From the NCBI GenBank assembly GCA_977020255.1, contig CDROCS010004649.1, forward strand, positions 1 through 64,000: a DNA stretch of 64,000 nt. The letters run 5' to 3'. The stretch comes from Obrimoposthia wandeli (Eukaryota). Each line of letters opens with the position of its first letter. The stretch's first letter is position 1. A model generated the notes under the pieces. It saw only the letters and a program-made list of their open reading frames with translations, was not told the origin of the DNA and searched no databases. Made by a program: the position numbers and the translations under genes. Shown in pieces: positions 3-64,000 of this stretch.

Positions 3-1424
3 TTAGGTTTGAATCGTCATGTTGATATAGCCATAAACCACGACCCTGCCGCGATTGATATGCATAAAATGAACCACCCAGAAACAGCGCATTACTGCGA
101 GTCTGTTTGGGATATTGACCCAGTAGAAGCATGTAACGGTAGTCCTGTTGGTTTGGCGTGGTTCTCTCCTGATTGTAAACACTTTTCTAAAGCAAAAGGC
201 GCTACACCTGTTAATAAGAACATTCGTGGCTTGGCTTGGGTTGCTGTTCGTTGGGCGGCTCTAGTGCCAGTTAGAATGATTATGTTAGAAAATGTTGAAG
301 AGTTCCTAACGTGGGGCCCTGTTATTGATGGTAAGCCATGTAAAGAACGTAAAGGCGAAACATTCAAAGCTTTTGTTGCTGCTTTATCTACTGGTCTACC
401 ACTTGATCACCCTTCCATTGATGATGTTAAAGCGGCACTAGGTGATGGCTTCGATTTAGCAGCAATTCAGAAAGGGCTAGGGTATCAAGTTGAATGGAAA
501 ATCATTAAAGCCTGTGATTTTGGTGCGCCAACAATTAGAAAGCGCTTATTCCTTATTGCTCGAAATGATAACCAGCCAATTGAATGGCCCGCTTCTACGC
601 ACGGCACTGGTTTAATACCATACAAAACAGCCGCCGATATCATAGATTGGAATGTTCCAGTTCGCTCTATATTCAATCGCAAGCGCCCGCTAGCAGCGAA
701 AACAATGGCAAGAATTGCAAAAGGATTACAACGATTTGTTATTGACTCGAGCAATCCATTTATAGTACCTGGCGAATGCGTAACTCCTTTTATCACTGAA
801 CACGCTAATGGTTCAAATCAACGGAATATGTCTGCGACTGAACCATTGCGCACCATTTGCGCTCAAGTAAAAGGCGGTCATTTTGCTGTTGTCGCGGCGC
901 ATATTGCAAAACACTGCACAGGGGTTGATGGTTCAGACATTCAAGAACCATTACACACTGTTACGGCTAAAGATCACAACGCTCTGGTTACTAGTCACAT
1001 GGTTAAAATGCGAGGCACTAATATTGGCCACAGTACTGACGAACCTGTTCATACAATATCAGCCGGCGGTTTTCATATTGGTGAAATTCGCGCTTTTCTA
1101 GTTGAATATTACGGCACCGGAAATGCTCATAGAGTGGATAAACCATTACATACTGTTACCACTAAAGACCGATTTGGCTTGATTACAATCAAAGGCGAAG
1201 ACTATCAAATAGCCGATATTGGTATGCGTATGCTTGAGCCGCATGGACTGTTTGCCGCCCAAGGATTCCCTGCTGATTATGTGACCGATGTTGATACCAA
1301 AGGCAAGAAACTGAGCAAGGCAAGTCAAGTTGCTAGATGTGGGAACGCTGTTTGCCCTCCTATAGCTCAAGCTTTAGTACAAGCTAATTACAATATGAGT
1401 TCTACTGACAAGAAAGCGGCATAA
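3..1424 (+). CDS. Phage/ICE-type DNA cytosine-C5 methyltransferase, 5' end cut by the window edge
   Basis: Motif IV variant FSPDCKHFS, motif VI ENV, motif VIII RKRLF, C-terminal GNAV. The frame is open to the left edge and motif I (FxGxGG) is missing, so the gene starts upstream of the window. Confidence 0.9.
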   Translation, partial: LGLNRHVDIAINHDPAAIDMHKMNHPETAHYCESVWDIDPVEACNGSPVGLAWFSPDCKHFSKAKGATPVNKNIRGLAWVAVRWAALVPVRMIMLENVEEFLTWGPVIDGKPCKERKGETFKAFVAALSTGLPLDHPSIDDVKAALGDGFDLAAIQKGLGYQVEWKIIKACDFGAPTIRKRLFLIARNDNQPIEWPASTHGTGLIPYKTAADIIDWNVPVRSIFNRKRPLAAKTMARIAKGLQRFVIDSSNPFIVPGECVTPFITEHANGSNQRNMSATEPLRTICAQVKGGHFAVVAAHIAKHCTGVDGSDIQEPLHTVTAKDHNALVTSHMVKMRGTNIGHSTDEPVHTISAGGFHIGEIRAFLVEYYGTGNAHRVDKPLHTVTTKDRFGLITIKGEDYQIADIGMRMLEPHGLFAAQGFPADYVTDVDTKGKKLSKASQVARCGNAVCPPIAQALVQANYNMSSTDKKAA

Positions 1425-1550
1425 CTCAAAACTGAACTAATTGAGATATGAATATATTCAGCAGCCCAGAACACGATATCTAGTTAATGCTAGCGTAGTG
1501 ACCATTGACACACTTAATAACGAAACTACTAACACTTTAGGTAAGCGTAT

Positions 1551-1805
1551 ATGAAAACGACATTTTTATTGCTAGCTGAATTTGAAAAAACAGTCATCCC
1601 TTTAGATGATATATGCGAAGAGTACTTTGGATGCAGATCACATACAGCTAAACAACATGCATCTGCAGGAACTTTGCCAGTCCCAGCATTTAGATGCGGA
1701 AAAAACAAAACTACTTGGCTAATCCATTTAACCGATCTAGCTGACATGATAGACAAAAGAAGAACAGAAGCTAAAAAAGAGTGGATTGGTCCTGCAAAGT
1801 TATGA
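1551..1805 (+). CDS. Pyocin activator PrtN-family small DNA-binding protein (putative excisionase/RDF)
   Basis: MKTTFLLLAEF...IPLDDICEEYFG...AGTLPVPAFR...WLIHLTDLADMID pattern; typical position facing the integrase. Confidence 0.8.
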   Translation: MKTTFLLLAEFEKTVIPLDDICEEYFGCRSHTAKQHASAGTLPVPAFRCGKNKTTWLIHLTDLADMIDKRRTEAKKEWIGPAKL

Positions 1806-2000
1806 GGTATATTAGCTAAGCTATGAATTAACAAAATCCTTGACTGAATGACTCAGAGCCGAAGCAGACATTTTACAACTCAATAGAACATTTTTTTTAT
1901 TCGTAATATTTATACCCGTTTTTGTTAGTCTGGTAATGAAAGCAGGTGTTTTCTATAGTCAATAAAAGAATAGTTATTAAAATAAGCAAGTTACCTAAAT

Positions 2001-2036
2001 AAAAACCGCCCGATTTTAATCAAAAGCGGGTGCTTT
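2001..2036. repeat. Imperfect palindrome, copy 1, sharing AAAAGCGGGTGCTTT with 4544-4577; probable terminator of the RloC-like gene
   Basis: aaaaaccgcccgattttaatcaaaagcgggtgcttt, ~15 nt past the stop codon. Confidence 0.7.
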
Positions 2037-2050
2037 ATAAGGGATCTAAG

Positions 2051-4363
2051 TTATAAACCAGTAATAAAACATAATGTCTCTTTAGCATAATTCTTAACTG
2101 TTTGGATTTCTAAGCCTTGAATTTGTGTATCGAACCCTTCCGCATGATGATAATTTTTAGAAAACTCATTAATTTTTTGAATTAAGTCAATTCTATTGTT
2201 TCTATCATAGAGGGGGTTTTGTTCATCTTGTTCACTTCGGATAAGCTCAATCATACTTCCTAACCATTTATCATTTGTGAATTGTTTAGGAAAACAAAAC
2301 CTTAAATATCCCTCGAGAATTGGGCGGATAGAACGAGCAATTTTAACTTTATCATCTTCATTTCCAGAAGCAACAAACTCATATAAGCTATTGTATTCTT
2401 TATGATATGAATGCATAACATAGGATTCATAACCATCTGTCATATCTATTAGTTTGCTTGATATATATTGAGAACTATCAGGATTTGAGGGGGTTGTATC
2501 GATATAATCTGAATGGATTTCAAAACACTTAGTTTCTGCAGACAAAATTGAGTGTTTTAATACATCTGACAAAAAGTATACATCGTGACTAAATATAAAC
2601 GTTTGATAGTTGTTATTAACTAATTTTTCTATTTCAACAATTGTTGCATTTCTTCTATGCACATCTAGTGATGACATAGGATCATCAAGGGCAATAATTA
2701 CGTTATCTGTATTTTTATCTTTAAATTTAGATAAGAAAAAGGCTAGAGCTAATGCAGACCTATCACCCATACTCAGAACGTTATCAAATATTTTTTGGTT
2801 ATCGTTTAATATCGATAATTCGTTACCTATAAATGTCATTACATAAATGATTCGACTAGCTCCTCTATGACCTTGGTTATCCTTTTTTAGCTCCTTAATG
2901 CGGATCATAGAGTTAAAATTTTTCAATAGTTCGTTAATTGAATCCCTAGACTTACCTATACTATCTTCTTGCTCTGTAGCTATCAGATCTCTCAAATCAG
3001 TAATTTCTTTTGTATTGGCAGACTTTTTCGATTCGAGTAGCTTTAATTCTTCTAAATTTTGTAGGCTCTCAGGTGAAAATCTTGCTTTGGATTCTTTTAG
3101 TTTATTTATTTTATTAATTATTTCTTCGATTGTATCTGACCCTAAACCAGAAACAAAAGTATCTATATACTTATTGAATTGTTCAATTTTTGCGTTGTAA
3201 ACAACAAAATTGATTGATGAAAATATTTTTTGAAAAACGTTATCAAATTTAGAAAAATTAGAATCTGATAGTAAATCTTTTTCTTTGGCTTTTATTAATG
3301 ATCTAATTTCAAAATTAAGGTCTTTGGACAATTTATCTATAATTTTAAAATCATAATTTGGTTCAACTGTTTTTATTCTATCAGACCATTCTCTAATTAT
3401 TTCTATATTTCTTTTTGTAGTATCTTCTTGCTCTTCAATTTTTACACCAATATCCATAACATCAAGTTCAAACTGACTACTAGCAAGTTCAAATTCATTA
3501 CTTGCTGTCAAATAAGCTTCATTCATAAATTCTTGATATAAATGATAGATTGGTGAAGTGGAAAGAGACTGGCCACAAAATGGGCAGTTATTAGACTCTG
3601 TTACAAGCTCCCTCCCTTCTTCGATCCAGACATTATCCTGATCTTTTTGGTTCGCTTCTATATGTTTGGAAACTTCTTCTTGTGCTTCTTTTGATAAAGA
3701 AGCAATAGTAGTAATAAAACAGCTTTTATCTAATGTAGGTTGTTCAATACTCAGTTTTTTGAGCTTATCCCTTTTTCTGAAGTGTTCAATATCTTTTATA
3801 TCTTGAAATTTTTTCTCAAATTCTGATATTTTATTTTCAACGTCATTGATTTTTTTTATTTTTCTTATTTTGGCTATTGTTTGATTTTTGAGTTGAGCTC
3901 TAATTTTTGTTGATAAGGTAGTAATATCAGACGCTAAATTTCCATTATCTAATTTTATTGAGTCAATTTTTGTTTGATGTGTTACAGAAAGCGCACCCAA
4001 TGAAAATTCATAATAGTTAGCAAGTTGTGAACTTTCAGTACCTTTAGAAGTGTATAAATTCTTTTCAATGAAAGATTGATTGAACACTTGAAATGTATAT
4101 GGGACAGATAACGATTTAAGATCAACTCTACAGTTGTCGTCGAACAAGAAATTTAAGTTAGGTTCTCCCTCTGTCTCTCTAGAGGATAATGATTTTATAG
4201 TATCTATATCATTTTCATTAATGTATTCAAAAATTTTACCTAATGTTGATTTTCCAGAACCATTTCGACCATATATAAGATTGAGTTTTTCAAAAAAACT
4301 ACCTTGGCTTCCATTGTGTTGCCATTGCTTAACATTTTCTAATTTTATTAATTTCTTAAGCAT
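2051..4363 (-). CDS. RloC-like (AAA_13) ABC-ATPase / zinc-hook / HEPN protein, putative anticodon nuclease defence gene
   Basis: Walker A GRNGSGKS, central CPFC hook within coiled coil, signature LSMGD, Walker B/D-loop LDDPMSSLD, H-loop FSHD, C-terminal RPILEGY and NEFSKNYHH (HEPN-like). Much more AT-rich than its flanks. Confidence 0.75.
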   Translation of the reverse strand: MLKKLIKLENVKQWQHNGSQGSFFEKLNLIYGRNGSGKSTLGKIFEYINENDIDTIKSLSSRETEGEPNLNFLFDDNCRVDLKSLSVPYTFQVFNQSFIEKNLYTSKGTESSQLANYYEFSLGALSVTHQTKIDSIKLDNGNLASDITTLSTKIRAQLKNQTIAKIRKIKKINDVENKISEFEKKFQDIKDIEHFRKRDKLKKLSIEQPTLDKSCFITTIASLSKEAQEEVSKHIEANQKDQDNVWIEEGRELVTESNNCPFCGQSLSTSPIYHLYQEFMNEAYLTASNEFELASSQFELDVMDIGVKIEEQEDTTKRNIEIIREWSDRIKTVEPNYDFKIIDKLSKDLNFEIRSLIKAKEKDLLSDSNFSKFDNVFQKIFSSINFVVYNAKIEQFNKYIDTFVSGLGSDTIEEIINKINKLKESKARFSPESLQNLEELKLLESKKSANTKEITDLRDLIATEQEDSIGKSRDSINELLKNFNSMIRIKELKKDNQGHRGASRIIYVMTFIGNELSILNDNQKIFDNVLSMGDRSALALAFFLSKFKDKNTDNVIIALDDPMSSLDVHRRNATIVEIEKLVNNNYQTFIFSHDVYFLSDVLKHSILSAETKCFEIHSDYIDTTPSNPDSSQYISSKLIDMTDGYESYVMHSYHKEYNSLYEFVASGNEDDKVKIARSIRPILEGYLRFCFPKQFTNDKWLGSMIELIRSEQDEQNPLYDRNNRIDLIQKINEFSKNYHHAEGFDTQIQGLEIQTVKNYAKETLCFITGL

Positions 4364-4543
4364 CAATTTATCCCTTAATTGTAAAAACTGCTAAATATTG
4401 AATCCTCGCAGGATAAAGTTTTATATATTTCCCCACAACCACAACCACAAGCCCGTGTTCTCTATTTTGTAATACACACCATTATATAGATTTCCTATAA
4501 AAAACAACTTATAGCAAAAGGTTATATGATTTATGTGACTAAT

Positions 4544-4577
4544 AAAGCACCCGCTTTTATCTAAAAGCGGGTGCTTT
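4544..4577. repeat. Perfect palindrome, copy 2 (AAAGCACCCGCTTTTA-TC-TAAAAGCGGGTGCTTT)
   Basis: 16-bp arms. The 15 bp at 4563-4577 are identical to 2022-2036. Confidence 0.75.
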
Positions 4578-4797
4578 TTTGAGTAGGGGTGAAAAGCATT
4601 AACTATCTTAAATCTAGTAACCCTATTTGGGCAATAAACCGATAAAGCCGATCTAGCTAATATGCCCGCTCCAGCCTCTTTGGAATATTTTAACCAATGA
4701 CTGGAATCGGCCAATCTCGAAAATTTCACACCACTGTTGCGTAAAACCTCGACCACTGTTCCTATTGCACAGTGGAGCTCAACTAAAAAGCATGGAA

Positions 4798-5859
4798 TTA
4801 ATTCTCATCATATTTGTCATGTAGACGACTAGGATACAATTCCGTATAGACTTGCCATAGCGTATTTATATTTCTATGCCCTGTCACTTGCGCAACTTCA
4901 TCTATCGTGTAGCCTTTCTCAAACAATCGGCTAGCGCCCTCTCGACGCAAATCATGATACTTTAAATCTAGAATGTTTAACTGATTTCTTACTTGCTGGA
5001 AGCCTGAAGACACGGATCGAGAATTATAAGGAAAGATGCATTCACTATTTCTCGGCTGGCGTTGCAATATATTCCAAGCATCGCCTAAAAGCGGCGCTAA
5101 CAAATGATTGCCCGTTTTTTTCCTAGGATCTTTTCTATCTTTTACCAGAACCGCTTTTTGCGAGACATCTACATCAACCCATTTAATTGAACAAACCTCT
5201 CCTATACGCATACATGATAATATTGAAAAATCTAATATATCAACAAAGGGGATATTCGAACTAGGGCTGGACTCCCTTTTCAACAAACCTTCCCTCAGCT
5301 TTTCAAGCTCTATAGCAGAAGGCCTTCTCGATCTTCTTTCACTTTTACCGATTAAATTGAGATCATGCAATATAGGGTAGGCATCTATCACACTTTGTTC
5401 AGTAATATCATAGCCCCAATAGGGTTTGGCAACCTTGAGAACGCTACGTATATAGCTAACATCATGGTTAATTGTTGATTTACCCGCCCCGCTTTCATTA
5501 CGTAGCTTACAATGGTTTATTACATCTCCCGGTGTTAAATCGCCAAGATAAACATTCGCTATATCACAGTCCGAGATTAAATTTAACACACCCAATTTTG
5601 TGCGTTTTAGTTGCGAACCAAAATCTTCAATATACTTTTTTATTGCATCGCCGAGTGTAATGTTTTCAGTACTACCACCAATCCCATTTTTTTCTAAATC
5701 ATATACACGGTTTTTTCCCCAAGCTACAGCAGTAGAATGCTTAGAGAATGTTCTTGATTCCCTATATACTACAGTACTTGCTTTTTTAACTCGCACATTC
5801 GTTGTATACCTAGGTGTGCCACTGACTGTTTTGCGCTTGTTTATAGTATAACTTGCCAT
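4798..5859 (-). CDS. Tyrosine recombinase/integrase resembling dusA-associated integrases
   Basis: Catalytic R (SCMRIGE), HDLRR, GHRN and Y (LWQVY); N-terminal MASYTINKRK arm-binding region. Likely start is the ATG at 5859. Confidence 0.9.
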   Translation of the reverse strand: MASYTINKRKTVSGTPRYTTNVRVKKASTVVYRESRTFSKHSTAVAWGKNRVYDLEKNGIGGSTENITLGDAIKKYIEDFGSQLKRTKLGVLNLISDCDIANVYLGDLTPGDVINHCKLRNESGAGKSTINHDVSYIRSVLKVAKPYWGYDITEQSVIDAYPILHDLNLIGKSERRSRRPSAIELEKLREGLLKRESSPSSNIPFVDILDFSILSCMRIGEVCSIKWVDVDVSQKAVLVKDRKDPRKKTGNHLLAPLLGDAWNILQRQPRNSECIFPYNSRSVSSGFQQVRNQLNILDLKYHDLRREGASRLFEKGYTIDEVAQVTGHRNINTLWQVYTELYPSRLHDKYDEN

Positions 5860-5952
5860 GATAAAATCCAAAGGGGCTACAAAATTTACGTAGCCCATTT
5901 GTAGCACCCTCAACTAAAAAAAGCCAATAATTAGCGATAAATAAGGAAGAAT

Positions 5953-6861
5953 ATGACTATATGCAAATCTCCTCTAACACCTATGAGTACTGACATTATT
6001 GATAGTTCAAGGGTTGTCGGATTGGAGACATACCCTATCACGGATTGGGATGATGCCTACGCAAATGCTAGTCATATTCCAAACGGTTTAAGTTATATTG
6101 ATAGCTGGCTTGAATCAGCCAAAACTTTTCGTGAATACATGCTTGCTAAAGGGAGGGCTCGATTGGATATTCGCTACGGTGAAAATCAGCGAAATGCTTT
6201 CGATTTGTTCATGCCGGATACTTCAAAATCATCTCCAGTAAAAGGCTTAGTTGTCTTTGTACATGGTGGGTTTTGGATGATGCTAGATAAAAGCTCTTGG
6301 TCACACTTAGCTCAAGGTAGTTTAGATGCAGGCTTCGCAGTAGCGATGCCCTCTTATACGTTATGCCCTGATATACCTATTGGCGGTATCGTTAAAGAGA
6401 TTGCAATGGCGATAGAATCTGCAGCCAAACTAGTAGCGGGCGAAATTAGATTGACAGGTCATTCAGCTGGCGGGCACTTAGTCACCAGCATGCTCTGTGA
6501 AGATAGCCCTTTAGATGTAACAGTAAAGCAGCGCATCGCCAAAACGGTTTCTATATCAGGCGTACACGATTTAAGAGCACTATTAAATACTAAAATGAAT
6601 GAGAGCCTACAGCTAGATACACAACAAGCAAATGAGCTGAGTACTGTACTTAAAACACCTTCTCATTTAGCCCCATTAACGTGTTGGGTAGGTAGTGACG
6701 AAAGACCTGAGTTTAAGCGTTTAAACCAATTGCAGGCGCAAATGTGGCAAAGCTTTGCACTGCAAACTAATTGGGTAGAAGAGAAAAACAAACATCATTT
6801 TAATGTTGTAGATGGACTAATGGATAAACAGCACCCTTTAATGCAGTCTCTGCTCGCCTAA
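5953..6861 (+). CDS. Alpha/beta hydrolase, kynurenine formamidase (KFA)-like
   Basis: DWDDAYAN start, HGGFW oxyanion motif, GHSAGG nucleophile, HHFNV. An alternative TTG start exists at 6022. Confidence 0.8.
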   Translation: MTICKSPLTPMSTDIIDSSRVVGLETYPITDWDDAYANASHIPNGLSYIDSWLESAKTFREYMLAKGRARLDIRYGENQRNAFDLFMPDTSKSSPVKGLVVFVHGGFWMMLDKSSWSHLAQGSLDAGFAVAMPSYTLCPDIPIGGIVKEIAMAIESAAKLVAGEIRLTGHSAGGHLVTSMLCEDSPLDVTVKQRIAKTVSISGVHDLRALLNTKMNESLQLDTQQANELSTVLKTPSHLAPLTCWVGSDERPEFKRLNQLQAQMWQSFALQTNWVEEKNKHHFNVVDGLMDKQHPLMQSLLA

Positions 6862-7682: not shown

Positions 7683-9152
7683 ATGGGCCAGATTAATTTT
7701 AAAACTAAAATAAGTGCTTTAAGACCCAATGATACACACCTAAAAAAAGAGGCATGCAGCCCTCTAGATTTACAACATCACTTTGAAAGCGATCGTGGCC
7801 GCATTATCAATAGTGCAGCGATACGACGCTTGCAGCAAAAGACCCAAGTCTTCCCTCTTGAAAAAAATGCAGCGGTGCGCAGCCGCCTTACCCATTCAAT
7901 GGAAGTACAACAAGTTGGGCGCTTTATAGTACAACGAATTTTTTTCAAGCTCAGTGAAAAAAAACAGCAAGAGTACGGCTTAGATGGATTAGAGCGCTGT
8001 ATTGAGTCTTTAGTTGAGATGTCTTGCTTGATGCATGATATAGGTAACCCACCTTTTGGCCATTTTGGCGAACAGGCGATAAACCAATGGTTTGCAAATA
8101 ATCTACTGTTGTTATCAGAGCAACCCAATGCGAGCGCTTCAACCAACATCTTTCATGATAGGCCTGAATTAATCAGAGATTTACTGCAATTTGAAGGCAA
8201 CGCTCAGGCCATTCGCCTGGTCTCATCTCTGCTTAATCTCAATGTAACCTTTACCCAAGCCGCAGGTATCTTAAAGTACACCCGCCCAGGTACCGCATTA
8301 AAAAATGCAACGCCTGATAATAAAAGCTACTTAATGAAAAAAGTAGGCTTTTATTTTAGCGAAACTAAATACATCACACGTTTGATGAATTCTTTAGATA
8401 TTGATACACATTGTCGCCATCCTATTTCTTACATAATGGAGGCCGCTGATGATATTTCATATTGTCTGGCAGATATCGAGGATGGTGTAGAAAAAGGCAT
8501 TTTAACTACGGATGATTTAAGCCTGTTACTTGAGCACACTTATCTAGACATTTTGAGCACGTTTGACATTAGTGCCCCCCAAGCTAAAACATTTATGCAT
8601 GACACTTTGCAAAAAGCCAACGCGAGTTCGAACTTCTTTGTCAGCTTAAGAGTGTCTCTATCGCACCCACTGGTTTTACACGCTACTGATCAATTTATCA
8701 ATAACATCGAGCACGTTTATCAAGGTACTTATAACAATGCATTACTTGAGGACAATAGCCGCTACCATGCCATTACAGAAACCTTAAAACAAATAGCGAT
8801 CAAACACGTTTTTAACCATAAAGAAGTAGAAAAACTAGAATTGCAAGGCTATCGAATCATCAGTGGTTTGCTTGATTGTTATAAACCCTTATTGGCAGTT
8901 AGCGCAGCGGTGTTTGATGAAATTTTATTAGCGACAAAAAATGCACCTTTGCTAGAAAAGCATTTAGCAAAAAAACTCCCTGCCAGACACCTTACTACCT
9001 ATACCCAAGCGATCAACAATATAGGTTCTGACAATAGTGAGTTTGCAGCACTAGAATACTACTATCGCTGTAGATTAATACAGGATTACATCAGTGGTAT
9101 GACTGATCAGTTCGCTTATGATGAGTATAGAATGCTGATGGTGATTGATTAA
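7683..9152 (+). CDS. dgt: dGTP triphosphohydrolase (E. coli-like)
   Basis: FESDRGRII..AIRRLQQKTQVFPLE, RLTHSMEV, HD motif HDIGNPPFGHFGE, EAADDISY, DYISGMTD. Confidence 0.95.
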   Translation: MGQINFKTKISALRPNDTHLKKEACSPLDLQHHFESDRGRIINSAAIRRLQQKTQVFPLEKNAAVRSRLTHSMEVQQVGRFIVQRIFFKLSEKKQQEYGLDGLERCIESLVEMSCLMHDIGNPPFGHFGEQAINQWFANNLLLLSEQPNASASTNIFHDRPELIRDLLQFEGNAQAIRLVSSLLNLNVTFTQAAGILKYTRPGTALKNATPDNKSYLMKKVGFYFSETKYITRLMNSLDIDTHCRHPISYIMEAADDISYCLADIEDGVEKGILTTDDLSLLLEHTYLDILSTFDISAPQAKTFMHDTLQKANASSNFFVSLRVSLSHPLVLHATDQFINNIEHVYQGTYNNALLEDNSRYHAITETLKQIAIKHVFNHKEVEKLELQGYRIISGLLDCYKPLLAVSAAVFDEILLATKNAPLLEKHLAKKLPARHLTTYTQAINNIGSDNSEFAALEYYYRCRLIQDYISGMTDQFAYDEYRMLMVID

Positions 9153-42466: not shown

Positions 42467-43791
42467 GGCTCTTCTCCGCTTTGTTGAGTGAGATTAGCCT
42501 TATGTAAAAAACATTGATTGATCATCTGGTAACGATGATTGGCGTATCTTCAGTTTGAAATGTTCCGTGTCCCTAATTCCCCTTGCTCGCTTGCAGATTA
42601 TACCAATGCTGACATTTCCTGCTTCTATTCTAGCGCTGGTTAGCTTGTGTTTCGCATAATTGCAGATACCCACTTGATGACGTCTCAGCGACTTGGAAAA
42701 CTTTTTAAGATAGAGCATATTTGATTCATCCGCTATCTGACACCACTCTTCTAGCCTTGTTTGCATTTCCTCATATGTTTCAGATTCCCATAAATCTTGA
42801 AGCTGTTCTTTCATGATATAGAGCGTGTTCAAGTTAGCGTTTTCACTGAGAAGAGCCTTTAGCTTTACTTCTTGTGAATCGGTCAGTTTATCTGCATTCT
42901 TTAGCACTAAATAATGCGTACCCTTTATCAATTATTTTTCTGCTTTATTGGCTTTCTAAACTCAATTCTGTGTTAATTACCTAGCGCTTTTTTGTAGTTT
43001 TGCATCACATGAAAACGATCAAAAACCATGTCAGCATTGGGTAAACTATCGCGCACTGATTTTTGATAAGACGGTCCCATGTCCATTGCTTCTATACCGG
43101 CGGCCGTCTCTCTTGTCAGCCCTCTAGAAATCCAGAGAAAACATCCGCAGTGCGTCCAGTCCCCACCCAAATCAAATGCCCTGCGACCATGTCGTAAACG
43201 ACCGTCATGTAATCATGTCCTTTTACTCTAGCAACCTCATCTACACCTATGTACTTCAAGTTTTTAAGCTCGCTAGGAACGAGGGCAGGAAGCGTTGATT
43301 GTAAGTGGTATTTATCAATATTTTTGACCGTTTCCCAGCGTACACTTAGATGACGAGAAACGGCCTGTATGCTCATATGACGATATAACCCACTGACCAG
43401 TTGGCAGAACCGCTTGGCACAGCGACTGCCTTTATAAACGAAATCACAAGACTCTATGCGCCGCTCGTTTTTGCTGATCCATACCTGTGCTAGCTCGATT
43501 TCTAAGGTGCAAGGTAACCCAAATAATGGAAGGTCTTAAACCGAACGTCGAACATATCGATTAATAGTACCCATGAGACCTGTTCGAAGGTCTATAGCCT
43601 TAAAACGTTTATCGCGATGGCAGTGAATAAGGCCTTTATTCAAGGCTTTATGATGTTCTATTTTATTGACGCGCTGGCCTTTAAGGGAAAAAATATCGTT
43701 CGGGTTACTGGTAGTCATGTATTTGTTATATGTAAAGTTGTGAGGAGGATGACTTGAATGAGCTATATGCTCAACTTCCAAGCATATAGCC
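42467..43791 (-). mobile_element. Degenerate ISL3-family insertion sequence (transposase in several fragments)
   Basis: Fragments 43536-43781, 43116-43376, 42973-43170 and 42500-42931 carry GVDE, MDMGPSY, FDRFHV and EAGN ISL3 motifs. Ends are GGCT..N12..GTTGAG imperfect IRs; no TSD found. Confidence 0.85.
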
Positions 43792-43845: not shown

Positions 43846-46179
43846 TTATTCAACCACTGCTTCTAAGGTATCTGCAAGAAACTTTTGTGTCTCACTAAGA
43901 GAAACAGGAGGAGAAATGAAGTAGCCTTGTATAATGTCGCATCGTAACTCTTCTAATAGATTCAGTGATTTTAAAGATTCTACACCTTCAGCCACGACAA
44001 CCATGTTTAGAGTGTGCGCCATGCCAATAATAGCTTGTACAATGGCTAGTGCGTCCGGCTCATCAACGATTTCTTTAATAAACATACGATCAATTTTTAA
44101 TGTATTGAATGGAAAGCGCCGTAAATATGACATTGCGGAATACCCAGTCCCAAAATCATCCAATGCTATATTAATATCTAACGCTTGTAGTTGATGCAAT
44201 ATACCCAGCATTGTTTTAGCGTCGTTAAGTAATACAGATTCTGTGATTTCCAGTTCTAATCTATGCGGTTGTATGTTGTGTTTTGCTAATATTTTTTTGA
44301 CGGCTGGAAGCAATTGATCTGTTAGTTGCAATGCAGAAACATTTACCGCAATACTAACTGCATCTGGCCAAAAACTGGCTTGATAACAGGCTTCGTTCAA
44401 TACCCATAGGCCAATTTCTTCAATAAAACAGCATTTTTCTGCCACTGGAATAAAAATTTCTGGAGATATATTACCTAACTCAGGGTGTTCCCAGCGAACT
44501 AATGCTTCAAAGCTAACAACAGCTTTTGAATTGAGTTGATACTTGGGTTGATAGACAATATAGAGTTGCTCTTTTATTAACGCGTCTTGTAATGCATGCT
44601 CAAGCTTAAGGCGTTCGTTCAACTCTGTTCTCATAGATTGTGTAAAACAGCGTAACTGACCTTGGCCATCTGCTTTTCCAGCATACAAAGCCAAATCGGC
44701 ATTCTTGAGGACAGTATCGGGAGTTTCACCATCCGTTGGTGCATAGGACACTCCTATGCAGGCATTGATAGGGATAATCGCCCCCTCTATTTTAGTAGGA
44801 ATCTGTAAAGCTTGGAGAGTTTCTCGGGCAAAGCAAATAGCTTCTTCAGGTTGGTTTAAATAACGTAAAATAATGCCAAACTCATCACCCCCTATACGTG
44901 CTACTAAATCCTGCTGGCGTGCTTGGTTTTGTAAACGCTGTCCAATAACACTCAAAAGCGTATCACCTGCATTGTGCCCCATTGTATCATTTACTGATTT
45001 AAATCCATCTAAATCAATACATAAGACAGCACCTAGCCACTTACCTTTATTCACCTCGTTAATCATGTCTTCAAGCTCTTCCTGAAAACGATGACGGTTA
45101 GCTAAGCCTGTAACTGCATCGTAATGCGCTAGTTGCCAAACATTTTGTTGCGCCATATGGGTTACTGTAATATCAGAAATAACGCCACGCCAGCCATCAT
45201 CAGGTAATTTTTTAGCAGTAAAAGACCACCACAATATATGCCCATTTATAGACAGTGGTAGTTTAATATCACGAAATCCTTCAACACCTTTTAGTGACAT
45301 ACTCAAACTTTGAAAAGAAGAAAAAGCTTCATCTTGTAATGAATTGGGTAGAGCTGTTTGATATTTAGCAATAGATGATAATAAATTTATGTTTTTCAAA
45401 CTGCCTTTTGTAATACAAAATAACTCGGACAGTTTATTTGATACGTTGCGTAATTTTATGTCGTTGTCGGTTTCCCAAAGTACATCAGCCGAATGCTTTT
45501 CGAAATCATTTAATAATAAACTAATTACTTGGCGTTGTTGTACTTCCTGCAACTCTGAAATAACGCGAGCTTTAAATGTATCTGCTGCATTAATCACACT
45601 GAAAACGACAGTTAAAACATAGGTAATGAGTAAAAGTACCATGGGTAATGCTGATAACATGTCAGACATTAAAAGGCCTATAACAGAGCCTAACCCAAGT
45701 GTGACAGGGAAAACTATACCTGCACCACGAATAGCAGAAAGAGCGAAGCCCCCTGCGCAAATCATTCCTACAACAATGGTGCTTAACAACACTTGTTGCT
45801 CAGGTAATGCCGATGGTAATAAACAGATAGGCAAAGCAGCCCAAACCGCTGCTAATATAAAGGCTTGTCGCACAGCCACACGAGCACCACGCTTAGAGAC
45901 ATGAGTTGGTGGAGTATTATTATAAAACTTATACCAACTACGCATGGCTGTTAACATTAGTAGAATGATTATAGTTGCCCAAACCAATAGCGTCGTGTGA
46001 GATTCAAATTGCCAAAATACAGAGCAAATAACAATAACATTCAAAGTATTTACGAATGCAGTTAACGGGGTTAAACGGACAATTGATTGAATTTGCATTG
46101 CTCGAACTTGAGATTCAATATCTTCTGTCAACTCAGGTGTATTTTGCACGATATGCTCCGTAGATATATGTTTTGTCAC
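43846..46179 (-). CDS. Membrane-anchored GGDEF-EAL c-di-GMP enzyme with PAS-like linker
   Basis: About 5-6 TM helices, intact GGDEF, EAL and DDFGTGYS motifs. Confidence 0.92.
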   Translation of the reverse strand: MTKHISTEHIVQNTPELTEDIESQVRAMQIQSIVRLTPLTAFVNTLNVIVICSVFWQFESHTTLLVWATIIILLMLTAMRSWYKFYNNTPPTHVSKRGARVAVRQAFILAAVWAALPICLLPSALPEQQVLLSTIVVGMICAGGFALSAIRGAGIVFPVTLGLGSVIGLLMSDMLSALPMVLLLITYVLTVVFSVINAADTFKARVISELQEVQQRQVISLLLNDFEKHSADVLWETDNDIKLRNVSNKLSELFCITKGSLKNINLLSSIAKYQTALPNSLQDEAFSSFQSLSMSLKGVEGFRDIKLPLSINGHILWWSFTAKKLPDDGWRGVISDITVTHMAQQNVWQLAHYDAVTGLANRHRFQEELEDMINEVNKGKWLGAVLCIDLDGFKSVNDTMGHNAGDTLLSVIGQRLQNQARQQDLVARIGGDEFGIILRYLNQPEEAICFARETLQALQIPTKIEGAIIPINACIGVSYAPTDGETPDTVLKNADLALYAGKADGQGQLRCFTQSMRTELNERLKLEHALQDALIKEQLYIVYQPKYQLNSKAVVSFEALVRWEHPELGNISPEIFIPVAEKCCFIEEIGLWVLNEACYQASFWPDAVSIAVNVSALQLTDQLLPAVKKILAKHNIQPHRLELEITESVLLNDAKTMLGILHQLQALDINIALDDFGTGYSAMSYLRRFPFNTLKIDRMFIKEIVDEPDALAIVQAIIGMAHTLNMVVVAEGVESLKSLNLLEELRCDIIQGYFISPPVSLSETQKFLADTLEAVVE

Positions 46180-46639
46180 AACATTAGAGATTATCCAAAA
46201 TTCATACTTCTAAGGATTATAACGAAGAGGTGACCCTGAATAATCTAGCATAAAGTGATTAATCTATTATGAATTTGTTTAATTGAGATTGTTTACATTA
46301 TAAAACAGAAAAAATAACAATTAACTGAAAAACTAATAATGAGGAACCGGCCGCTAGTTCTTCACGGTAAAAAAGGCAGGAAATGACATAAAGCTGTCGT
46401 TTTAATTGATCTTTTAACAGTCGATTGGAGAGCTAAATATGTGCCTAGAATACTGGGGTTTACTATTGTGTTTCTAACGGCAAAAATAGCTAGCTCCTTT
46501 ATGAAGAGCAAGTGAAGCCAACTTTTATGCTTTTGTTCTCTATTACATAGTATGTTTTTATAAAGCCTTAACCGGCAGATACATCTCTACATTATGCAGC
46601 TACCGTGAGTGTTATTCAGGATCGTTTAGATGATTATTA

Positions 46640-61369: not shown

Positions 61370-61979
61370 AAAACACCGCTAAGAAACAACGTTCTCCCCT
61401 TTCCTTAGAGGGCTTAATAACATGAGACTTAATGCTTCACCTTGGATGCAAGTTGCTATGGATCTAGCTTTAGTATCATTACAAAGGCGTGGAGATCTAT
61501 GTAATCTAAAGTATGACGATATACACGATGGTAGAATGTTTGTTATCCAGGAGAAAACTGAGAAGCATGGTGTACGTGCAAGGCTCTCTATCGAGTATGG
61601 ACAGCAATTAGAAGCTATCATCAACCAAAGCCGTGCAGATAATATAGTAACGCCCTATGTGCTACATGAGCGCCCTAGTCGCATTATAAAAACAAACACT
61701 AAGTCACACTGGTGTCAGATATTGCCTGATCGCCTAAGTAAACGGTTTGCTGCTGCTCGAGATAGCATAAAGAAGTTTAGTGATATGAAGCCATCTGAGA
61801 AACCGACCTTTCATGAAATAAGGGCTTTAGGTGGTTGGCTATATTTACAACAAGGTCATAGCAAAGAGTACGTTAACTTACTAATGGGACATACTACTAT
61901 GGCTATGACAGATCATTATACTGATAGGCATGTGGAATATACTGAGTGTAAGGCTGAGCTTAGCTATCGAAATCTTTAA
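61370..61979 (+). pseudogene. 5'-truncated lambda-like phage integrase (catalytic half)
   Basis: QRRGDL, FHEIRALG, LMGHT..AMTDHY; N-terminal domains absent, frameshift near 61420. Confidence 0.85.
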
Positions 61980-62200
61980 TTTCGGCTGACACAAAGCGAC
62001 CATTTAAGTCAGTAGTTATCGGAATTGAAACGACATTTAACAGCCAGCAACCTAAACTTTATCATCTAAGCGCGAATCGTATCAGCCGCTCATCGTTAGT
62101 GGATGCCAATGGCAATCGGCCCGCTGCTATTTTCAGTGAAACGTTCTATTTCCTGCTCAGTAAGGTGCGCTAAAAGCTACCTAAAAATGATGCGAACCAA

Positions 62201-63023
62201 ATGATAAGGTTAATTGATTCGACAACGATTGATTTGAACCTTAATCAATTTAAGTGGGCAAAGTTTCGTTCAAAGAAGGCAGGGATAAAGCTTCATACCG
62301 TGTACGACCCTAATGCCGCAGTCCCTGTTTATTTTTCATTAACAGAGGCTAAAACAAATGATGCTAAAGAACTAAGCAACCTGCCGATGATGCCAAACAC
62401 GACCCATATTGTTGATCGTGCTTATAATAATTACAGTTGGTTTTATTCATTGAATCAGGATAACTCTATATTTGTTGGTCGAATGAAGACAAACACTTGC
62501 TATCAAGTAGTGAAAAAAAAGATTCCTATAGGAATAGGAGTCGTTGCGGATGAAATTATTCGACTAAGCAGCCCTAAAGGAAAGAAGCTCTGCCCAATTG
62601 ATTTACGCCGCGTCACCTTCGTTCGAGAAGAAGATCAAAAAGAACTGGTATTTATCACCAATGATTTATCACGTTCAGCGGTGGAGATCGCTGCATTATA
62701 TAAACAGCGCTGAGAAATAGAATTGTTTTTTAAGCGGATAAAACAGAACCTAAAAATAAAACGTTTTATCAGCCAAAATAAAAACGGTGTGATGATTCAA
62801 GTATTGATAGCACTCATATCCTACCTGCTACTAAAGTTGACACAATTAACATACTTGAGTAAGCAAACACTCTATCAGATATGCCTATTAATCGGTGCAA
62901 ACCTGATGGAGCGTAGAGGTATGATGGAGTTGCTAAATCCATGCTTAAAACGGCTAAAACCAGACAAAAACAGCGTGGAACAAATGAATTTGGGGCTTTT
63001 AAATGTTTAACCGGACACTAGTG
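62201..63023 (+). mobile_element. Truncated IS4-family element; transposase broken by an in-frame TGA at 62711
   Basis: GIKLHTVYD, DRAYN, Y..R(*)EIE.FFK signature; both ORFs in the same frame; right end ...ccggacactagtg; left end missing. Confidence 0.85.
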
Positions 63024-63055
63024 AAACAGTATTATAAAATATAGATGCTTATGTG

Positions 63056-63871
63056 AAAAATGGCCGCTTCTAGCCGATTCCAGTAAACTAAACAGGTGAG
63101 TAGCCAATTCTGAAGCTACTTCACCTTTTCTGCTATATTTCAGTTTTTTCAGCAAGCTCTAGAGCATCATCTAAATCGATCCCCAAATATCTGACTGTGC
63201 TTTCTAGTTTTGTATATCCTAGTAACAATTGTACTGCTCGTAAATTTTTGGTTCGTTTATAAATCAGCGCAGCTTTTGTTCGGCGCATTGAATGAGTGCC
63301 GTAAGCAGTAGTATCCAATCCAATGCTACTAACCCAGCTTTTAACAATCCTTGAGTATTGTCTTGATGAGATATGCTTCTTCTTATTCGAACAGCTGGGG
63401 AATAAATAGTCATTTGGTTCGCGTCCTGTCAATCGAACCCAATCGATAACAGACTCTTGTGTGCGAGGCATTATTTCAAATCTAACAGGAGTTTGAGTTT
63501 TCTGTTGTAATATCATAGCCCGAGATTGAATTATCGTACCTAGAAATACATCTCTTATTTTTAAGCTAATGAAATCACAGGATCGCAATTTGCTATCAAT
63601 TGCGAGATCAAACATCGCCAATTCACGGTAGCATTGCTTAAGTTGTAACCTTATTCTGATTTCCCATATTTCTCTAAGCTTAAGCGGTTTCTTTTGCCCT
63701 ACCAATTTACCTTTGTTCCATGGTACTTTCGAAGCATTGTTGTATTGGGTCTCCATGATAGTCTCCTTTATCGTGTTATGGAGACTTTAGTATTATATTT
63801 TTCATGAAGAGCTTAAACCCTGCTTTAGCTGACTGTTACAAGAACGGAAATGACACAAAGCGGCCATTTTT
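63056..63871. repeat. Inverted repeat pair enclosing the small tyrosine recombinase gene
   Basis: AAAAATGGCCGCTT at 63056-63069 and its reverse complement at 63858-63871 (14 bp perfect), extending imperfectly to ~30 bp. Confidence 0.85.
63133..63756 (-). CDS. Small (207 aa) tyrosine recombinase, PWNKGKLVGQK family
   Basis: DSKLRSCD (R), GTHSMRRTK (HxxR), LLLGYTKLESTVRY (Y); no arm-binding domain and no IntI insertion. Confidence 0.9.
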   Translation of the reverse strand: METQYNNASKVPWNKGKLVGQKKPLKLREIWEIRIRLQLKQCYRELAMFDLAIDSKLRSCDFISLKIRDVFLGTIIQSRAMILQQKTQTPVRFEIMPRTQESVIDWVRLTGREPNDYLFPSCSNKKKHISSRQYSRIVKSWVSSIGLDTTAYGTHSMRRTKAALIYKRTKNLRAVQLLLGYTKLESTVRYLGIDLDDALELAEKTEI

Positions 63872-64000
63872 AACGCAGCAAACAGGCCAGGTATTATCGC
63901 GCCCCAGCCGAAGTCCCTTGTTGATCTGTTCGTTAGTGGTTGATCAGTGCGCCATAACTTGATGAACAATGAAGGCATGTTAAGCAGGACCCACTTACTC

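Follow-up and report, generated by a model that had tools for sequence, protein, structure and literature searches.

A probably decayed mini tyrosine recombinase gene and its flanking sites suggest an integron- or pdif-like gene-module system in Proteobacteria

The first 64,000 nucleotides (nt) of contig CDROCS010004649.1 (C4649), hereafter the window, encode a 207-amino-acid (aa) tyrosine recombinase whose gene lies between two short inverted sites, and the question that this locus raises is whether gene and sites belong to a system that moves genes and, if so, to which kind. The contig is bacterial, 82 kb long, and part of the 1.35-Gb mixed assembly GCA_977020255.1 of Obrimoposthia wandeli. 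An initial annotation, made from the sequence alone, had proposed a platform in which genes flanked by paired sites form mobile units served by this recombinase family. From sequence comparisons we propose, with a probability of about two in three, that the locus derives from an integron/pdif-like gene-module system with a dedicated mini-recombinase, in which strand exchange would take place within a centre shared by two sites, and that the copy in the window has decayed. The recombinase gene and the sites around it are the following.

63133-63756, minus strand: gene of the 207-aa tyrosine recombinase, catalytic domain only (Phage_integrase domain)
63059-63088, plus strand: site B (type II), with strong arm AATGGCCGCTT, centre CTAGCCGA and a degenerate inner arm; profile score 13.1 bits
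63839-63869, minus strand: site C (type I), with strong arm AAATGGCCGCTT, centre TGTGTCAT and a degenerate inner arm; profile score 12.7 bits
61987-62005, minus strand: site A, strong arm and centre of a type I site; 18/19 identity to 63851-63869 (site C)

Site B lies about 45 nt beyond the stop codon of the recombinase gene, with its strong arm on the far side, and site C about 85 nt upstream of the start codon. The enclosure of the gene by inverted sites stands as first described, apart from site B having been placed one base off its true span. The promoter said to be enclosed with the gene does not: none upstream of the recombinase passed a consensus scan, and a perfect TATAAT that can be made out by eye is paired with a poor -35 element. 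Exact matches to AATGGCCGCTT occur at 63059-63069 (plus strand) and 63858-63868 (minus strand), and together the flanking arms 63053-63069 and 63858-63874 make up an inverted repeat of 17 nt with 94% complementarity. If one mismatch is allowed, the 11-mer has seven matches versus 1.39 expected, a number reached in 1 of 100 shuffles, and the best score of the site profile in the reversed-contig control was 7.2 bits, far from the scores of sites B and C. Because of these two controls, a chance origin of sites B and C is unlikely. The third site was also recognised correctly in the initial annotation, as it starts 8 nt past the stop codon of a phage-type integrase fragment (61422-61979); it has a 13-nt upstream flank in common with a site on contig C5945. 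Two weaker copies reported at ~62107-62130 and ~63884-63915 gave no profile match. In the window organism only the outer arm of the sites is well preserved, and the centres on the two sides of the gene differ (GTGTCA versus TAGCCG), so that sites B and C cannot simply recombine together.

The enzyme belongs to a distinct and widespread family. The window open reading frame (ORF) matches Pfam PF00589 (Phage_integrase) with 59.4 bits (cut-off 27.1, E 4.9e-16) over residues 42-191 of 207, and there is therefore no room for a core-binding domain; in the family as a whole, the catalytic domain begins near residue 20 and the core-binding domain is absent. Its members are mini tyrosine recombinases of about 208 aa with the signature PWNKGK...QQKT...H-x-x-R...LLLGH...VRY. 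Relatives with 57-86% identity are encoded in 231 species genomes of alpha-, beta- and gammaproteobacteria, a large protein collection holds at least 8000 matches (all 8000 scored candidates were significant), and 397 plasmid records carry the family, including pMOL30, Pseudomonas aeruginosa megaplasmids and Escherichia coli/Klebsiella plasmids; some plasmids come from clinical E. coli, Klebsiella and P. aeruginosa. Database annotation calls these proteins 'integrase' only, and no curated family names them, as the best NCBIfam scores fall far under their cut-offs (XerA 58 versus 220). The IntI-specific model TIGR02249 gave 19.1 bits against a cut-off of 265, and the tyrosine-type DNA invertase model NF007371 gave a weak match (18.6 bits versus a cut-off of 222, E 0.001). 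Among solved structures, the closest in sequence is that of P. abyssi XerA (E 6e-4).

A gapless alignment of 57 sites from many genomes yielded the consensus nAATGTCCGCTT-TGGGCCGA-TnGCnGnCnT, a 10-8-10 arrangement with which the 11-8-11 geometry first assigned to the window sites agrees. The cognate site spans about 28-30 bp and consists of a 10-nt strong arm (A-A-T-G-n-C-n-G-C-T-T), an 8-nt centre of one of two recurrent types, with GGYCG in type II and GTGYCA in type I, and a second arm whose likeness to an inverted copy of the first varies from good to barely recognisable. The palindromic register is 57% paired, versus 33-44% in slid controls. There is little covariation between the arms, as would be expected if these bind protein rather than form stems. 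A hairpin or stem reading of the inverted site pairs described below was rejected on the same grounds, and such pairs fold only weakly better than shuffles.

These sites accompany the recombinase gene across Proteobacteria. When flanking inverted repeats were sought in 80 homologue loci, exact seeds found few and a 16-of-20 scan was too noisy, and a profile search was used instead. It found 139 matches in these loci and 8 in reversed controls. Matches on the sense strand peaked 50-100 nt upstream of the recombinase gene, and those on the antisense strand 0-50 nt downstream of it. Sites resembling the consensus adjoin homologous recombinases in all three classes, and in the 4.7-Mb genome of Amphritea the five best sites all lie inside a 3.3-kb island together with the sole recombinase gene. 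This comparative evidence supports the suggestion that they are tyrosine-recombinase core sites and neither attC nor dif; they are not imperfect palindromes ending in RYYYAAC ... GTTRRRY, as attC sites are. Elsewhere in the assembly, a 19-nt motif recurs in about 35 copies (at most two mismatches) on other bacterial contigs, and many of those copies form the left arm of imperfect palindromes of 80-95 nt, which we call doublets.

Evidence that crossover takes place at the site centres comes from several pairs of related loci. In Phaeobacter inhibens P92, a 1,783-bp module comprising an alpha/beta hydrolase gene and a recombinase gene (57% identity) is 99.5% identical on two plasmids and also occurs in further flank contexts. 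A related Phaeobacter plasmid carries the uninterrupted target with the sequence CGGCCC once, whereas in the occupied plasmid each end of the insert carries CGGCCC, the left end being formed by the strong arm of the module itself and the right end by that of the target. This centre falls in a profile-detected site 20 nt past the stop codon of the Phaeobacter recombinase gene, and site B of the window is the counterpart of the right-hand junction. A neighboring 1.28-kb segment, which lacks a recombinase and is found elsewhere alone, overlaps the 1,783-bp unit by exactly those six bases.

Shared modules in other genomes break at sites as well. The island of Amphritea balenae, with paa genes on either side, consists of a site, ORF283, a second site, the recombinase gene, an inverted site, ORF85, a doublet, an ankyrin gene and a last site, in this order; its positions 1968-2943, exactly from the first site to the second, correspond to 1501-2472 of a related genome, G015 (89% over 977 nt), at a different chromosomal locus, and G015 has an empty doublet in place of the recombinase segment. 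Two metagenome contigs encode an identical recombinase behind unlike upstream cassettes, with homology beginning at the edge of the upstream site, and in one of them at least eight small genes stand in an array, where a type II site, identical in centre and orientation each time, comes after six of the genes. A 545-nt module common to contigs C2422 and C2866 of the assembly is 98-99% identical inside and visibly less so across the type I strong arm and centre. Likewise, the likeness between the recombinase copies of the window and of contig C5465 ends inside both site centres. Break-points thus map to the sites, and in the Phaeobacter pair precisely to the centre. Since homology breaks inside the centres and the outer strong arms belong to the neighbors, the unit is not simply the DNA between two inward-facing sites; the idea of mobile units served by this family gains comparative support, and their delimitation in the initial annotation needs this correction. 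Amphritea also has a solitary, perfectly palindromic intergenic site far from the recombinase (G001:C17, L129:1501-1527), a candidate empty landing site.

Under the proposed mechanism, the recombinase would pair two sites with the same centre and exchange strands inside it, and a small DNA circle would be inserted at, or excised between, such sites. The circle may contain the recombinase gene, by itself or together with passenger genes, or it may consist of passenger genes only. In the islands that would accumulate, sites would stand between the genes, and some of them would form empty doublets, two sites in inverted orientation. The mini-recombinase is the presumed catalyst of these steps and the circle their presumed intermediate, and modules that lack a recombinase gene would be moved in trans.

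Several observations weigh against this proposal. The sites that flank the window gene are inverted and have unlike centres, and the locus is no simple substrate for excision or inversion; its recombinase departs from the family consensus at a catalytic histidine. In Amphritea, the two sites on either side of the recombinase gene are inverted, nearly identical and alike in their centre, GGGTCG, an arrangement for which inversion rather than excision is predicted. No joint that would indicate an inversion or a deletion at site B or C is present in public assembled contigs (Logan) aligned to the window locus. In one public contig (run X5), site B is joined at its inner side to the next doublet, at the type I arm of the latter (L009:2079 to 4187), with 2.1 kb skipped, 26 unrelated letters in between and only 22 nt on the shorter side; this contig is ambiguous, as it may represent a 2.1-kb deletion variant of the locus or an unrelated doublet elsewhere. 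Finally, the association of motif and recombinase family, so regular beside the gene in three classes, is loose at the genome level. Among 71 genomes of the Amphritea family, the recombinase is present in eight, with one gene copy in each, and good sites (E<=0.01) were found in 6/8 genomes with the recombinase and in 23/63 without it (Fisher p=0.056); G015 holds an island of seven sites and no recombinase homologue. By analogy with attC clusters and IntI, the sites may outnumber and outlast the enzyme; alternatively, another enzyme may use them.

The window copy itself is probably the relic of a recombinase module. The protein keeps the catalytic residues R58, K86, H154, R157 and Y190, and has tyrosine at position 181, where 99% of 120 family members have the second histidine of the pentad (H181Y); the full R-K-H-R-H/W pentad with its tyrosine nucleophile is accordingly incomplete at this position. 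The copy on contig C5465 and relatives retain the histidine. Ten other residues of the window protein, making 11 with H181Y, are also off consensus at positions conserved in at least 90% of the family. It is these changes, together with the degenerate inner arms, the unlike centres and the insertion sequence (IS) elements that flank or split neighboring sites, that point to decay. Two further recombinase copies in the assembly are one with an in-frame stop and one truncated by the contig end, with an IS in its upstream site.

Viewed on the minus strand, the region from 66 to 62 kb is a short cassette-like island between a che operon and accessory DNA, in the order DinB-family gene, full site doublet, SPFH gene, site C, recombinase, site B, IS fragment, site A. 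A putative attC in the interval from the SPFH gene to site C was rejected, since its folding is not superior to that of shuffled sequence (z 0.04). The IS fragment occupies the space that separates sites A and B. Further features of the window that bear on the sites are these.

62201-63010, plus strand: IS4-family transposase fragment (DDE_Tnp_1), two ORFs with an in-frame stop, N-terminus missing
61422-61979, plus strand: C-terminal part, 185 aa long, of a larger integrase of phage type that is not related to the 207-aa family
46330-46402, minus strand: degenerate doublet upstream of the GGDEF-EAL gene, made up of a type I arm and what is left of an inverted partner; 5.8 bits
1856-1872, minus strand: single match that resembles a site, downstream of the AAA_13 (RloC-like) gene; weak, at 8.5 bits (best reversed control 7.2)

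The same motif was initially said to bracket the RloC-like gene (AAA_13 ORF, 2051-4366, minus strand) with the same polarity as around the recombinase. Neither part of this holds, as we found the single 8.5-bit site on one side and a 4.2-bit partial match at 4696-4714 (minus strand) on the other, both on the same strand, unlike the recombinase flanks. Nor was an enrichment of defence genes between site pairs, also raised at the outset, shown. The RloC-like gene lies in a separate island (9-6861) that looks like a defence island and encodes a C5 cytosine methylase, the 771-aa AAA_13 ATPase and a full-length 371-aa integrase. On the other side of the GGDEF-EAL gene (43846-46179, 777 aa), a site-like match at 43028 was discarded because it falls inside an ISL3-family transposase pseudogene, pieces of which (42500-43781) adjoin that gene.

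Insertion sequences repeatedly meet the sites. An intact IS4-family element with a 427-aa transposase (C4649:66157-67580; L009:5157-6580) interrupts a further site and is flanked by an 8-nt duplication, TGGCCGTT, and in a seawater-metagenome contig the end of that element is joined to the equivalent of site A; given the split site and this junction, the element may also prefer sites of this kind. An IS1182-family element of about 1.75 kb with ends CAGACTGTGTGAAAACT (L024:437-2223 on G000:C1004, with copies on C2866 and C3914), and a derivative of about 170 nt that resembles a MITE (a miniature transposable element with inverted repeats; for example L022:8554-8714), have inserted repeatedly at TGTGTC inside type I sites. 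The C1004 copy sits at TGTGTC of the equivalent of site C. This IS seems to target type I sites.

The best surviving of the alternatives, and still an unlikely one, is that the recombinase gene is itself an IS- or MITE-like element, with a tyrosine 'transposase' acting on the strong arms as terminal inverted repeats, the 80-95-nt doublets as non-autonomous derivatives, and gene units mobilised in trans. The gene is indeed flanked by an inverted repeat (17 nt in the window, 26-29 nt in Amphritea), doublets occur with unrelated flanks on at least four contigs, and the strong arms point outwards in the doublets. However, the sole before-and-after pair, that of Phaeobacter, involves direct rather than inverted sites that share a 6-nt centre, with no target duplication beyond it; insertion took place at a pre-existing site, and genomes usually hold a single copy. 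The several near-identical copies with target-site duplications that mark IS and MITE elements were not found, and no such duplications were seen at the doublets.

Somewhat less likely still, the sites may be repetitive extragenic palindromic (REP)-like sequences or targets of another enzyme, such as host XerCD or an integron integrase, with the small recombinase as a frequent passenger. This would account for the sites and arrays in genomes that lack the recombinase, and for solitary palindromic sites that follow genes in the fashion of REPs. In the assembly, moreover, a GCGTTA motif resembling an attC end precedes type I sites within 27 nt in 17/36 cases (12.5% in controls, p=4e-7), and canonical attC sites stand in the same arrays as our sites on sister contigs (L022:8059-8156, 8425-8525). 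The assembly (G000), which is mixed and holds many bacterial contigs, contains four integron integrase genes and several IS91-like elements in which a Y2 transposase is paired with a tyrosine recombinase of about 310 aa; two cassette systems seem to be interleaved in the window organism. Against a role for another enzyme stand the fixed distances of the sites to the recombinase gene in three proteobacterial classes and the way in which site variation follows lineage. No canonical attC was seen in the arrays of Amphritea, G015 and the Nitrincolaceae, and with about 5-16 copies per genome the sites are far fewer than REPs. They are also unlike gammaproteobacterial dif, judged against the known dif consensus rather than by a computed comparison. 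The recombinase of the window is not an integron integrase, since neither the IntI model nor the features of attC are matched, and the recombinases linked to IS91-like elements, considered as possible members of the family, form a separate one.

That the recombinase instead serves an invertible switch of the Fim/Hin type, flipping a segment with its own gene and promoter and thereby altering the expression of a neighbor, we consider improbable. The protein consists of a catalytic domain only and is of the size of FimB and FimE, and the invertase model, for all the distance of its score from the cut-off, does give a weak match. The inverted sites with a common centre in Amphritea would suit inversion, as would an outward promoter-like match in the window at 63059-63031. 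In the window, however, the centres differ; the gene is co-oriented with the neighboring cassettes there, in Amphritea and in a Nitrincolaceae contig; and a second orientation was found neither among relatives nor as an opposite-strand joint at sites B and C in public contigs. A chance likeness of short motifs near an ordinary orphan integrase can be set aside almost entirely, for although the motifs are short and several extra copies first claimed are indeed due to chance, the shuffle and reversed controls, the cross-class conservation and the precise break-points refute it for the three main sites.

Two ways are known in which bacteria reshuffle individual genes through site-specific recombination, integrons and Xer-dependent modules, and each is important for how accessory traits spread. 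It is possible, though in our estimate a little short of an even bet, that the system described here constitutes a third gene-cassette platform beside these two, in which a catalytic-domain-only recombinase family with thousands of members across Proteobacteria exchanges self-carrying and recombinase-less modules at 10-8-10 sites. Our literature search found no publication that describes the recombinase family or the site, in keeping with the initial annotation, which did not recognise the platform as formally described. If the proposal is correct, it would assign a function to many small genes now annotated as 'orphan integrase' in genomes and on plasmids, the site model would allow automatic annotation of mobile gene modules of a new class, and a very compact recombinase-site pair would become a candidate tool.

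How the proposed system relates to known ones can be judged feature by feature. The pdif/Xer modules of Acinetobacter plasmids are bounded by 11-6-11 dif look-alikes served by host XerC/XerD (PMC6449649, PMC11705084). As with pdif, core-type sites of about 28 bp bound small modules of accessory genes, adjacent sites are often inverted, identical site-bounded modules are found in different replicons, and most modules lack a recombinase of their own. Unlike pdif, the sites have a 10-8-10 geometry and another sequence, and the gene of a dedicated 208-aa recombinase often lies at a site and travels with the module.

With integrons, the system has in common a tyrosine recombinase beside arrays of small, mostly promoter-less, co-oriented genes separated by sites, and the frequent occurrence of site clusters without a recombinase, comparable to clusters of attC sites lacking integrases (CALINs); doublets resemble attC in outline. 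It differs in that the enzyme has no IntI-specific insertion and the sites have no AAC/GTT R boxes, and the canonical attC on the sister contig (L022:8059-8156) looks different from them. The documented insertion uses a shared centre of the double-strand type, and the recombinase gene is co-oriented with the cassettes and can belong to the mobile unit.

FimB, FimE and MrpI resemble the family in their length of about 200 aa, in the absence of a core-binding domain and in their short sites, of which one half is strong and the other weak. The sequence similarity to them is remote, however, and they flip one short promoter element beside fimbrial operons, whereas the sites described here are numerous and delimit gene modules, and one insertion event has been documented. 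REPIN-RAYT systems likewise consist of a single-copy gene flanked by inverted short palindromic repeats, with inverted doublets dispersed elsewhere, but RAYTs are HUH single-strand transposases, and REPINs, which carry no genes, attain copy numbers in the hundreds (PMC3116915, PMC2817692). In the product of the window gene, Phage_integrase was the sole domain found, and no HUH Y1 transposase domain. IS91-family elements also tie a tyrosine recombinase to cassette arrays; those recombinases differ in being about 310 aa long and 25-30% identical, and they always lie beside a Y2 HUH transposase. The system works most like pdif modules and integrons, and has the defining features of neither.

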